DNA of 55,231 nt, the filler included, from Syncephalis fuscata S228 (taxonomy: Eukaryota; Fungi; Zoopagomycota): assembly GCA_025786725.1 (NCBI GenBank). It is 3 parts of 3 records of this genome, joined end to end, with 100 filler letters (N's around TTAATTAATTAA, not from the genome) between each part and the next. Parts side by side here need not be neighbours in the genome. Positions count along the whole stretch, not along the records: positions 1 to 27,795 come from JAHLTZ010000101.1; 2 more parts are not named here. One strand, 5' to 3'. Under the pieces are notes generated by a model. The model saw only the letters and a list, made by a program, of their open reading frames with translations, was not told the origin of the DNA and searched no databases. Shown here in pieces: positions 7,698-7,907 of this stretch. The first letter of the stretch is position 1, and the number at the start of each line of letters is the position of its first letter. Position numbers and translations under genes: made by a program.

Positions 7698-7816
7698 AAC
7701 TACGTTCATTGCGCCTAGAAAGCACCGGATCCCGTCCGATCTCCGAAGTTAAGTTAGGCCGCGCTTCTGTAGTACTGCGGTGGGGGACCACGCGGGAATG
7801 AGAAGTAATGTAGTTT
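7698..7816 (+). rRNA. 5S ribosomal RNA (119 nt), dispersed copy
   Basis: Conserved GATCCCGTCCGATCTCCGAAGTTAAG, TAGTACT and GGGGGACCAC motifs. Helices pair: I AACTACGTT/AATGTAGTT, II GCGCCTAG/TTAGGCCGC, GCTTCT/AGAAGT, CTGCGGTGG/CCACGCGG. Confidence 0.96.
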
Positions 7817-7822
7817 CAGTAT

Positions 7823-7893
7823 GCGTAGTTGGTTTAGTGGTATAATTACCGCCTGCCACGCGGTAGACCGGGGTTCGATTCCCCGACTACGCA
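7823..7893 (+). tRNA. tRNA-Gly(GCC)
   Basis: Acceptor stem GCGTAGT/ACTACGC, anticodon arm ACCGC-CTGCCAC-GCGGT, T arm CGGGG-TTCGATT-CCCCG, A box TGGTTTAGTGG, B box GGTTCGATTCC. Confidence 0.97.
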
Positions 7894-7897
7894 ATCC

Positions 7898-7907
7898 TTT
7901 TGCTTTT
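7898..7907 (+). terminator. RNA polymerase III oligo-T terminator (TTTTGCTTTT)
   Basis: These are the first T4 runs after the 5S start; they lie 4 nt after the tRNA-Gly discriminator base. Confidence 0.7.

Follow-up and report, generated by a model that had tools for sequence, protein, structure and literature searches.

Can a 5S ribosomal RNA (rRNA) gene lead an operon that RNA polymerase III (Pol III) reads? The question is raised by the mycoparasitic fungus Syncephalis fuscata S228, where the window (the whole stretch of DNA analysed here, 55,231 nucleotides, nt) carries a 5S rRNA gene followed almost at once by a gene for glycine transfer RNA (tRNA) on the same strand, and where the original prediction took the two genes for a candidate dicistronic unit. 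All 22 5S genes of the assembly have this layout, four tRNA families occur exclusively in such units, and one unit is conserved at the orthologous locus of a second Syncephalis species. From this arrangement we infer a single transcript, the factors that would make it and the enzymes that would process it. We consider it likely, with a probability of about 0.8, that the window copy is a member of a genome-wide family of 5S-to-tRNA dicistronic Pol III units, started at 5S +1, read through into the tRNA and cut by ribonuclease P (RNase P) to release the 5S rRNA.

The 5S–tRNA unit in the window

The leader cistron, the 5S rRNA gene, lies at 7698–7816 (+), as supported by Rfam RF00001, BLAST, comparison of variants and the predicted fold. 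It scores 106.2 bits against the Rfam 5S_rRNA model (threshold 38), covers the full model from 1 to 120, ends in GTAGTTT and is identical in sequence to 11 other copies in the genome (100% BLAST identity). Position 118 closes helix I, and the letter at position 119 depends on the class of the linked tRNA. The inter-cistronic spacer CAGTAT (7817–7822, +) contains no run of four T residues (T4), is predicted to be single-stranded and is the same in all seven units of the Gly class. It is followed by the trailer cistron, a tRNA-Gly(GCC) gene with intact A and B boxes at 7823–7893 (+), which scores 65.7 bits against Rfam RF00005, was called Gly(GCC) by ARAGORN at 7822–7894 and was recovered in the BLAST census. 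Counted from the 5S start, the earliest runs of four or more T residues (T4+) are those at 7898–7901 and 7904–7907, which make up the Pol III terminator region TTTTGCTTTTGC (7898–7907, +). At minimum free energy, the RNA of 7698–7901 (204 nt) is predicted to form the 5S three-way junction and the tRNA cloverleaf, two independent folding domains joined by an unpaired 6-nt linker.

Rfam, ARAGORN, the sequence and the fold therefore bear out the layout first proposed for this locus (5S, CAGTAT and an intact tRNA-Gly(GCC)), as well as its first T4 lying only past the tRNA. A homopolymer under-call at 7814–7816, raised as a possible artefact at the same time, was excluded because the TTT is common to 12 identical copies, the Asp and Lys classes have TTC or TTA in its place and the RNA-derived contigs show no indel. 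On the opposite strand, at 7754–7894 (−) and in paralogs, the NCBI/JGI gene model BDF19DRAFT_435835 (65 amino acids, “hypothetical protein”) is a spurious open reading frame (ORF) that spans a tRNA-Gly, the spacer and the 3′ portion of a 5S gene.

Every 5S gene in the assembly precedes a tRNA gene

The assembly comprises 29.4 Mb in 371 contigs, with the window as contig C4. Searched in full with the covariance model, it yielded 22 5S genes on about 19 contigs, and a BLAST census with the 5S sequence recovered the identical 22 only. The 21 further copies score 88.9–106.3 bits, against 106.2 for the window copy. Both searches found no 5S gene on contigs C187 and C202, which hold the 18S-5.8S-28S ribosomal DNA (rDNA), in agreement with the lack of an rDNA repeat context noted at the outset.

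ARAGORN called one tRNA per 3.1-kb 5S locus, on the same strand and downstream of the 5S gene in all 22 cases. The partners are tRNA-Gly(GCC) in seven units, tRNA-Asp(GUC) in five, tRNA-Ile(AAU) in four, and tRNA-Glu(CUC) and tRNA-Lys(CUU) in three each. The spacer measures 5–7 nt by ARAGORN ends, or 6–7 nt by cloverleaf ends, and comes in about 11 variants. A census of T runs found that none of the 22 units contains a T4+ from the beginning of the 5S gene to the end of the tRNA, while a run of T4–T6 starts 1–5 nt past the tRNA in each of them. The Asp and Lys classes are without even a marginal terminator at the junction, because their 5S genes end in TTC or TTA and so carry TT only. The dicistronic layout, in which two genes lie a few nucleotides apart on one strand, no T4+ separates them and the terminator follows the second, is present in 22 of 22 units. 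A genome-wide count of 5S genes with a tRNA less than 15 nt downstream, as had been suggested, accordingly gives 22 of 22 in S. fuscata, and the contrary type, a 5S gene with its own T run and no tRNA, accounts for 0 of 22. Chance adjacency is excluded, since the same-strand arrangement recurs at every 5S gene with five tRNA types and many different spacers.

The linkage is also exclusive. BLAST searches with each tRNA found that all detectable genes for tRNA-Gly(GCC) (7/7), tRNA-Asp(GUC) (5/5), tRNA-Ile(AAU) (4/4) and tRNA-Glu(CUC) (3/3) are linked to 5S. For tRNA-Lys(CUU) there are three linked copies and one free copy of identical sequence, the latter with an AT-rich upstream region and a T4 of its own. 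The A and B boxes are intact across all five linked classes, and in every unit the B box is equally far from the 5S start. One unit (L022; G000:C142:7950–8143) has two 1-nt deletions in its 5S gene (117 nt, 88.9 bits) and one in its tRNA-Gly, which points either to decay of the copy or to a fault in the assembly.

Conservation in Syncephalis plumigaleata

The Ile unit on contig C268 (L014) has an EB1-family gene in convergent orientation about 730 nt downstream. The EB1 ortholog of S. plumigaleata (P0123, 83% identity) lies on a 506-kb contig, and immediately downstream of it, in matching convergent orientation, are a 5S gene (Rfam 100.5 bits), a 6-nt spacer, tRNA-Ile(AAU) and TTTTTT. At this locus the 5S genes of the two species are 87% identical, with paired changes in a helix, and the tRNA-Ile and the trailing TTTTGCTGCGT are conserved. 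The spacers (CTATAA against CAACAA) have diverged in sequence and kept their length. The cross-species comparison covers one orthologous locus, that of EB1. Some 90 nt upstream of this unit in S. plumigaleata there is a tRNA-Pro(CGG) gene in divergent orientation (L142:11961–12035).

Other routes to relatives gave no further units. Synteny with a phosphoesterase gene led to 21.8 kb of S. plumigaleata that hold no 5S or tRNA, and the spurious junction-spanning ORFs matched solely the gene model of S. fuscata itself. A pattern scan of metagenomes (90 loci) found no close relatives of Syncephalis, its matches being bacterial operon tails, dense clusters of eukaryotic non-coding RNA (ncRNA) genes and chance matches.

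Proposed transcription and processing

Only 22 5S genes are assembled and none has a terminator ahead of its tRNA, so any 5S transcript runs through the tRNA. The predicted single transcript for 5S and tRNA is supported comparatively, by the layout of 22 of 22 units, the capture of four tRNA families and the orthologous unit in S. plumigaleata. Pol III would start at 5S +1. This start would most likely depend on the internal control region of the 5S gene and on TFIIIA, TFIIIC and TFIIIB, the last of these seated on AT-rich DNA upstream of the 5S gene. It would then transcribe the 5S gene, the 5–7-nt spacer and the tRNA, and stop at the T4–T6 run just past the tRNA. A cut by RNase P at the tRNA 5′ end would free the 5S rRNA with a 3′ trailer of 5–7 nt (CAGTAT in the window), which a Rex1-type 3′ exonuclease would trim, and the tRNA 3′ end would be matured in the usual way. 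Normal yeast pre-5S trailers, which are trimmed by Rex1, are about 5–7 nt long. A 3′-extended 5S rRNA is tolerated in a rex1 deletant (Acker et al., PMC2566860), and engineered cassettes of 5S, tRNA and single guide RNA (sgRNA) function in fungi, where their processing is ascribed to RNase P and RNase Z (PMC8542335).

The putative TFIIIB seat in the window is the AT-rich region at 7653–7697 (+), with a GC content of 27% between −45 and −15 according to the alignments. For the 5S start, GC content at −45 to −15 was 29%, whereas the equivalent position for the tRNA, which falls inside the 5S gene, has 63%; for the free tRNA-Lys the value is 13%. A genome search for an intact TFIIIA, proposed as a check on the prediction, found a TFIIIA-like gene that encodes nine C2H2 fingers, of which the ninth stands apart, and that has several short introns (L139:1309–2650; G000:C317:562309–563650, +). 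The exon with fingers 4–5 has as its top match in the PDB Xenopus TFIIIA residues 107–158, which are also fingers 4–5 (E 5.8e-19; next match 1e-11), and fingers 2–3 align collinearly with TFIIIA residues 41–94 (fingers 2–3) and also with yeast TFIIIA. The exons were searched singly, not as one joined model, and no stop codon lies inside the finger-coding exons read. The gene is, on these alignments, a probable TFIIIA. According to evidence summarised by Acker et al. (PMC2566860), it is the leader's promoter that prevails in tandem Pol III genes; the trailer RNA is a product of processing, and TFIIIB binding is disfavoured where the leader is GC-rich. Given the AT-rich upstream DNA, the TFIIIA-like gene and this precedent for leader promoters, the simplest reading is a type 1 promoter of the standard kind.

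RNA data came from one public run in the form of assembled contigs, which show neither single molecules nor transcript ends. The run is of RNA, because its contigs carry 13 spliced GT..AG joints (49–97 nt) within neighbouring minus-strand genes. Summed contig depth is about 95–110 over the two bins that span the unit and falls off in the immediate flanks (0–4), to 3.7 on the upstream side and 0 on the downstream side. This is consistent with expression of the unit and is no proof of a dicistronic precursor.

Flanking regions, mobile elements and neighbouring genes

The window has a partner locus on contig C113, whose flanks match at 99.1% (window 4621–7698) and 99.6% (window 7695–9306) and which has an extra 5,314 bp exactly between them. 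The extra DNA is an intact Ty3/gypsy long terminal repeat (LTR) retrotransposon, identified by its LTRs, target-site duplication and Pfam domains, in an orientation opposite to the 5S gene (L136:3075–8388; G000:C113:55074–60387). Its LTRs are 337 bp long, 100% identical and bounded by TG..CA, and a single ORF of 1,503 amino acids has Pfam domains in the order gag-PR-RT-RNase H-IN. The target-site duplication is TTCA, 4 bp that correspond to −3 to +1 of the 5S gene, so that the window holds the empty target site at 7695–7698. Yeast Ty3 inserts at Pol III start sites, and an insertion at −3 to +1, although a single event, fits initiation at 5S +1. The family has one further LTR in the genome, a solo LTR on contig C75 (6875–7208) with the target duplication ATAA, near which no Pol III gene was detected; start-site targeting is thus not established. 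With two insertion sites only, the family was set aside as a genome-wide probe of start sites.

Upstream of the 5S gene, 20 of the 22 units have a common homology of 700–1,300 nt. Its most conserved part is a block at −52 to −1, which includes the palindrome TTACGTAA and an A-rich tract, with a pairwise identity of 0.67–0.83 among these 20 copies. Further out, an AT-rich non-coding block of about 800 nt extends from about −850 to −60 of the 5S gene (L001–L022; e.g. L013:650–1440), is found solely beside 5S genes and shows 65–80% identity between subfamilies. It may be a promoter or a spacer that travels with the 5S gene. The idea that the common homology of 700–1,300 nt is a solo LTR of an element targeting the start site is not supported: its proximal 800 nt or so are confined to 5S genes, have no ORF of more than 100 amino acids, match no known ncRNA and show no clear TG..CA ends or target-site duplication. 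A GAAT motif at −30 to −27 occurs in the consensus, in the otherwise unrelated upstream region of the window copy and in S. plumigaleata, a retention of little weight. Farther upstream (about 850–1,440 nt from many 5S units) the distal part of the common homology is an unrelated dispersed repeat of about 400–550 bp, with 75–79% identity and more than 40 copies, often in nearby inverted pairs (e.g. L013:60–660; G000:C157:29415–29917 with 30083–30314), which is probably a non-autonomous transposon.

The units are mosaics, as three of them combine one upstream-5S block with three different tRNAs and unrelated flanks. These are L005 (Ile), L015 (Asp) and L019 (Lys), at G000:C2:8011, C328:362395 and C328:84600, whose blocks are 96–98% identical from about −1,025 to the 5S end and whose flanks are unrelated on both sides. 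To judge from this pattern, the mosaics would most simply have arisen by recent ectopic conversion or recombination via the identical 5S genes.

Beside the unit in the window lie two spliced genes on the minus strand: one at 5958–7374 (−) with a single 54-nt intron (7211–7264) seen in the RNA contigs, and one at 8340–10900 (−) with a contig depth of about 435 and at least 12 introns of 49–97 nt. Trypsin-family ORFs are present at 179–793 and 2122–3042. A further ORF, at 25519–26457, encodes a protein with 100% identity to an NCBI entry from S. fuscata, followed among the matches by proteins of S. plumigaleata (73%) and Piptocephalis.

Alternative explanations

Several observations weigh against a genome-wide family of read-through units to which the window copy belongs. 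The window copy lacks the −52 to −1 block found in 20 of 22 units, with only its GAAT retained, and may be a weak copy. Many units form pairs of 94–99.7% identity, and most have a partner on another contig that matches at 95–99.7% on both flanks (L003/L004, L006/L008, L009/L021, L011/L020, L016/L022, L017/L018 and window/C113); such pairs may be haplotigs of a heterozygous diploid, which would leave about 14 separate 5S loci. A canonical 5S array missing from the assembly is a further, improbable, possibility. The RNA contigs, besides giving no view of individual transcripts or their ends, are not clean Pol III products, because some of them reach 140 nt upstream or 255 nt downstream of the unit; the loose contig ends trace to paralogs of the Gly class (L009/L021 and L013). 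In Thamnocephalis sphaerospora and one JGI contig, tRNA-Ile(AAU) near EB1 is free of 5S, so that the arrangement is shared within Syncephalis and not by all Zoopagales. Lastly, each of the five tRNA classes retains intact A and B boxes, as the structure of a tRNA demands, which leads to the most probable of the alternatives.

Both promoters might be active, with the 5S rRNA made by read-through and most tRNA made from its own A and B boxes with TFIIIB placed on the 3′ part of the 5S gene; the adjacency would then reflect the history of the genome and not obligate co-expression. Start sites of tRNA genes usually lie about 5–7 nt upstream, and the spacer length therefore counts for this explanation, as does the identical free tRNA-Lys(CUU) gene in showing that a tRNA of the units can stand alone. 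That same free gene, however, has 13% GC where TFIIIB would sit, against the 63% that TFIIIB would meet inside the 5S gene. The Ty3-type element, in what was a single event, inserted at 5S +1 and not in the spacer, and in tandem tRNA genes and in the RPR1-5S fusion the leader promoter is dominant (PMC2566860). We regard independent tRNA promoters as unlikely on this balance.

A second alternative, already hinted at in the original prediction, is a hybrid promoter that dispenses with TFIIIA. In the manner of yeast U6 with its downstream B box, TFIIIC on the B box of the tRNA (at about +175), acting with either the 5S A box or the conserved upstream block, would set TFIIIB upstream of the 5S gene. 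In favour of it are the constant distance of the B box from the 5S start in all units, the −52 to −1 block (TTACGTAA and the A-rich tract) in 20 of 22 copies and the GAAT kept in the window copy and in S. plumigaleata. We nevertheless think it very improbable. The genome has a nine-finger TFIIIA-like gene without a stop in the finger exons read, the 5S genes fit the family model over their full length including the internal control region, and no data demand a new type of promoter. As that gene exists and the DNA upstream of 5S is AT-rich, a U6-like downstream B box is not needed.

That the units are not working 5S genes at all, being mobile-element or SINE-like (short interspersed element) repeats or minor copies beside a real 5S array that was never assembled, is hardly credible: it would account for the long upstream homology of 20 of the 22 units, for the near-identical blocks of about 1 kb that precede different tRNAs in three of them and for the frequent loss of repeat arrays from assemblies, but the 5S copies are full-length and nearly identical (105–106 bits), the 800-nt block occurs solely beside 5S with no LTR termini, target-site duplication or coding partner found, four essential tRNA families, among them every detectable gene for tRNA-Asp, are confined to the units, and the orthologous locus is conserved in S. 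plumigaleata with paired changes in a 5S helix. Transcription of 5S and tRNA from the 5S start thus remains the preferred reading.

Comparison with known systems

The closest natural counterpart is found in Yarrowia lipolytica, where 48 of 108 5S genes are fused downstream of tRNAs with spacers of 4–7 nt (Acker et al. 2008, PMC2566860). Their transcription relies on the promoter of the tRNA and needs no TFIIIA. The tRNAs fused there are Gly-GCC, Asp-GUC, Glu-CUC, Gln, Thr and Lys-Glu (PMC2566860). As in Yarrowia, the 5S genes of S. fuscata are dispersed outside the rDNA and fused to tRNAs by a spacer of 1–7 nt, with no terminator between the genes and one after the second; the partners Gly-GCC, Asp-GUC, Glu-CUC and Lys-CUU overlap strongly, and a TFIIIA gene, in S. 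fuscata a probable one, is still present. The order is reversed: the 5S gene is the leader and the tRNA the trailer, in S. plumigaleata as well, and the tRNA leader with drive from its A and B boxes that marks the Yarrowia type is replaced by a 5S leader in 22 of 22 units. Because of this reversal the tRNA promoter would be unable to drive the 5S gene and TFIIIA would not be bypassed, and the dispensability of TFIIIA is not expected to hold in S. fuscata. Processing of the tRNA would define the 3′ end of the 5S rRNA, not its 5′ end, and would do so by RNase P rather than RNase Z. The two systems further differ in extent, as 22 of 22 genes are fused in S. fuscata and four tRNA families are fully captured, and in lineage, with Yarrowia in Saccharomycotina and S. 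fuscata in Zoopagomycota. The units would thus function like Pol III dicistrons and yet are not of the Yarrowia type, since their leader is 5S.

In the available passages of a report on Trichomonascus vanleenenianus, all 5S genes are in tandem with tRNAs and the authors infer that TFIIIA may be unnecessary (PMC13130702). Given what those authors infer, the order is presumably tRNA first, which these passages do not themselves state, and this is probably a comparable tRNA-5S system.

Tandem tRNA-tRNA genes (tRNA-Ser/tRNA-Met of S. pombe and hemiascomycete pairs), plant tRNA genes joined to small nucleolar RNA (snoRNA) genes and tRNA-microRNA (miRNA) genes likewise give two RNAs from one Pol III transcript (PMC2566860). 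These are split by tRNA-processing enzymes and the leader promoter drives the trailer, as we propose for S. fuscata from gene layout, but their leaders have type 2 promoters whereas in S. fuscata a type 1 gene, 5S, comes first. In the account of Acker et al. (2008), every known Pol III dicistron is headed by a tRNA (PMC2566860).

The likeness to the tail of a bacterial rrn operon (23S-5S-tRNA), drawn with the original prediction, holds for gene order and short spacer, and would extend to processing by RNase P. Bacterial tails of this kind were met in the metagenome scan (L050 and L079). Unlike these tails, which belong to long operons read by the bacterial polymerase, the S. fuscata unit is a stand-alone nuclear Pol III unit, and the resemblance is therefore convergent. 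Engineered 5S rRNA-tRNA-sgRNA cassettes (Humicola insolens, PMC8542335; papers on Rhodotorula toruloides) also place a tRNA directly after 5S under Pol III; they are artificial, whereas the units of S. fuscata are natural and have no third RNA.

On environmental eukaryotic contigs (L098, L115, L110, L048 and others) some 5S genes have a tRNA 8–11 nt further on, with no T4 between and T6–T8 after. Unlike in S. fuscata these junctions are sporadic, and other 5S genes on the same contig have T7–T11 runs of their own. Seven contigs (L098, L110, L048, L130, L108, L053 and L115) carry dozens of tRNAs together with 5S, U1, U2, U4, U6 and signal recognition particle (SRP) RNA within 2–5 kb, and a Plant_SRP match in these dense ncRNA clusters suggests green picoalgae as their source. 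Other published 5S-tRNA linkages concern mussels, and pseudo-tRNAs or SINEs in fish. A search of the full-text literature, whose coverage leaves out most subscription journals, found no description of a natural nuclear 5S-first Pol III dicistron, in agreement with the initial impression that none had been described in fungi.

Implications

Pol III genes are, in the textbook view, single-gene units. Across the S. fuscata genome, all 5S genes, together with all genes detected for four major tRNA families, are organised in 5S-first units with a single terminator. If the units are transcribed as proposed, type 1 promoters would be able to act as operon promoters, the 3′ end of the 5S rRNA would come from RNase P cleavage instead of termination, and S. 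fuscata would be a natural system in which the production of ribosomes and of tRNAs is coupled at transcription. The La protein normally binds the U-tail of 5S rRNA; with a 3′ end from RNase P, the 5S rRNA of S. fuscata would be without a La-bound U-tail.

More tentatively, and short of a position we would defend firmly, the type 1 (5S/TFIIIA) promoter may alone supply four essential tRNA families, with every detectable tRNA-Asp gene among them. The supply of these tRNAs would then depend on TFIIIA and be tied 1:1 to 5S output at the level of transcription, and the units would constitute the first natural Pol III operon not led by a tRNA, fixed across the genus.

Judged by their layout, the units appear to work like the Yarrowia dicistrons without the tRNA leader that defines them, and present the reverse order of the only comparable natural case, that of Yarrowia. 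That the same partners (Gly-GCC, Asp-GUC, Glu-CUC and Lys-CUU) recur there with the order turned round points to a common cause, selective or mechanistic, which can be compared across two independent lineages.

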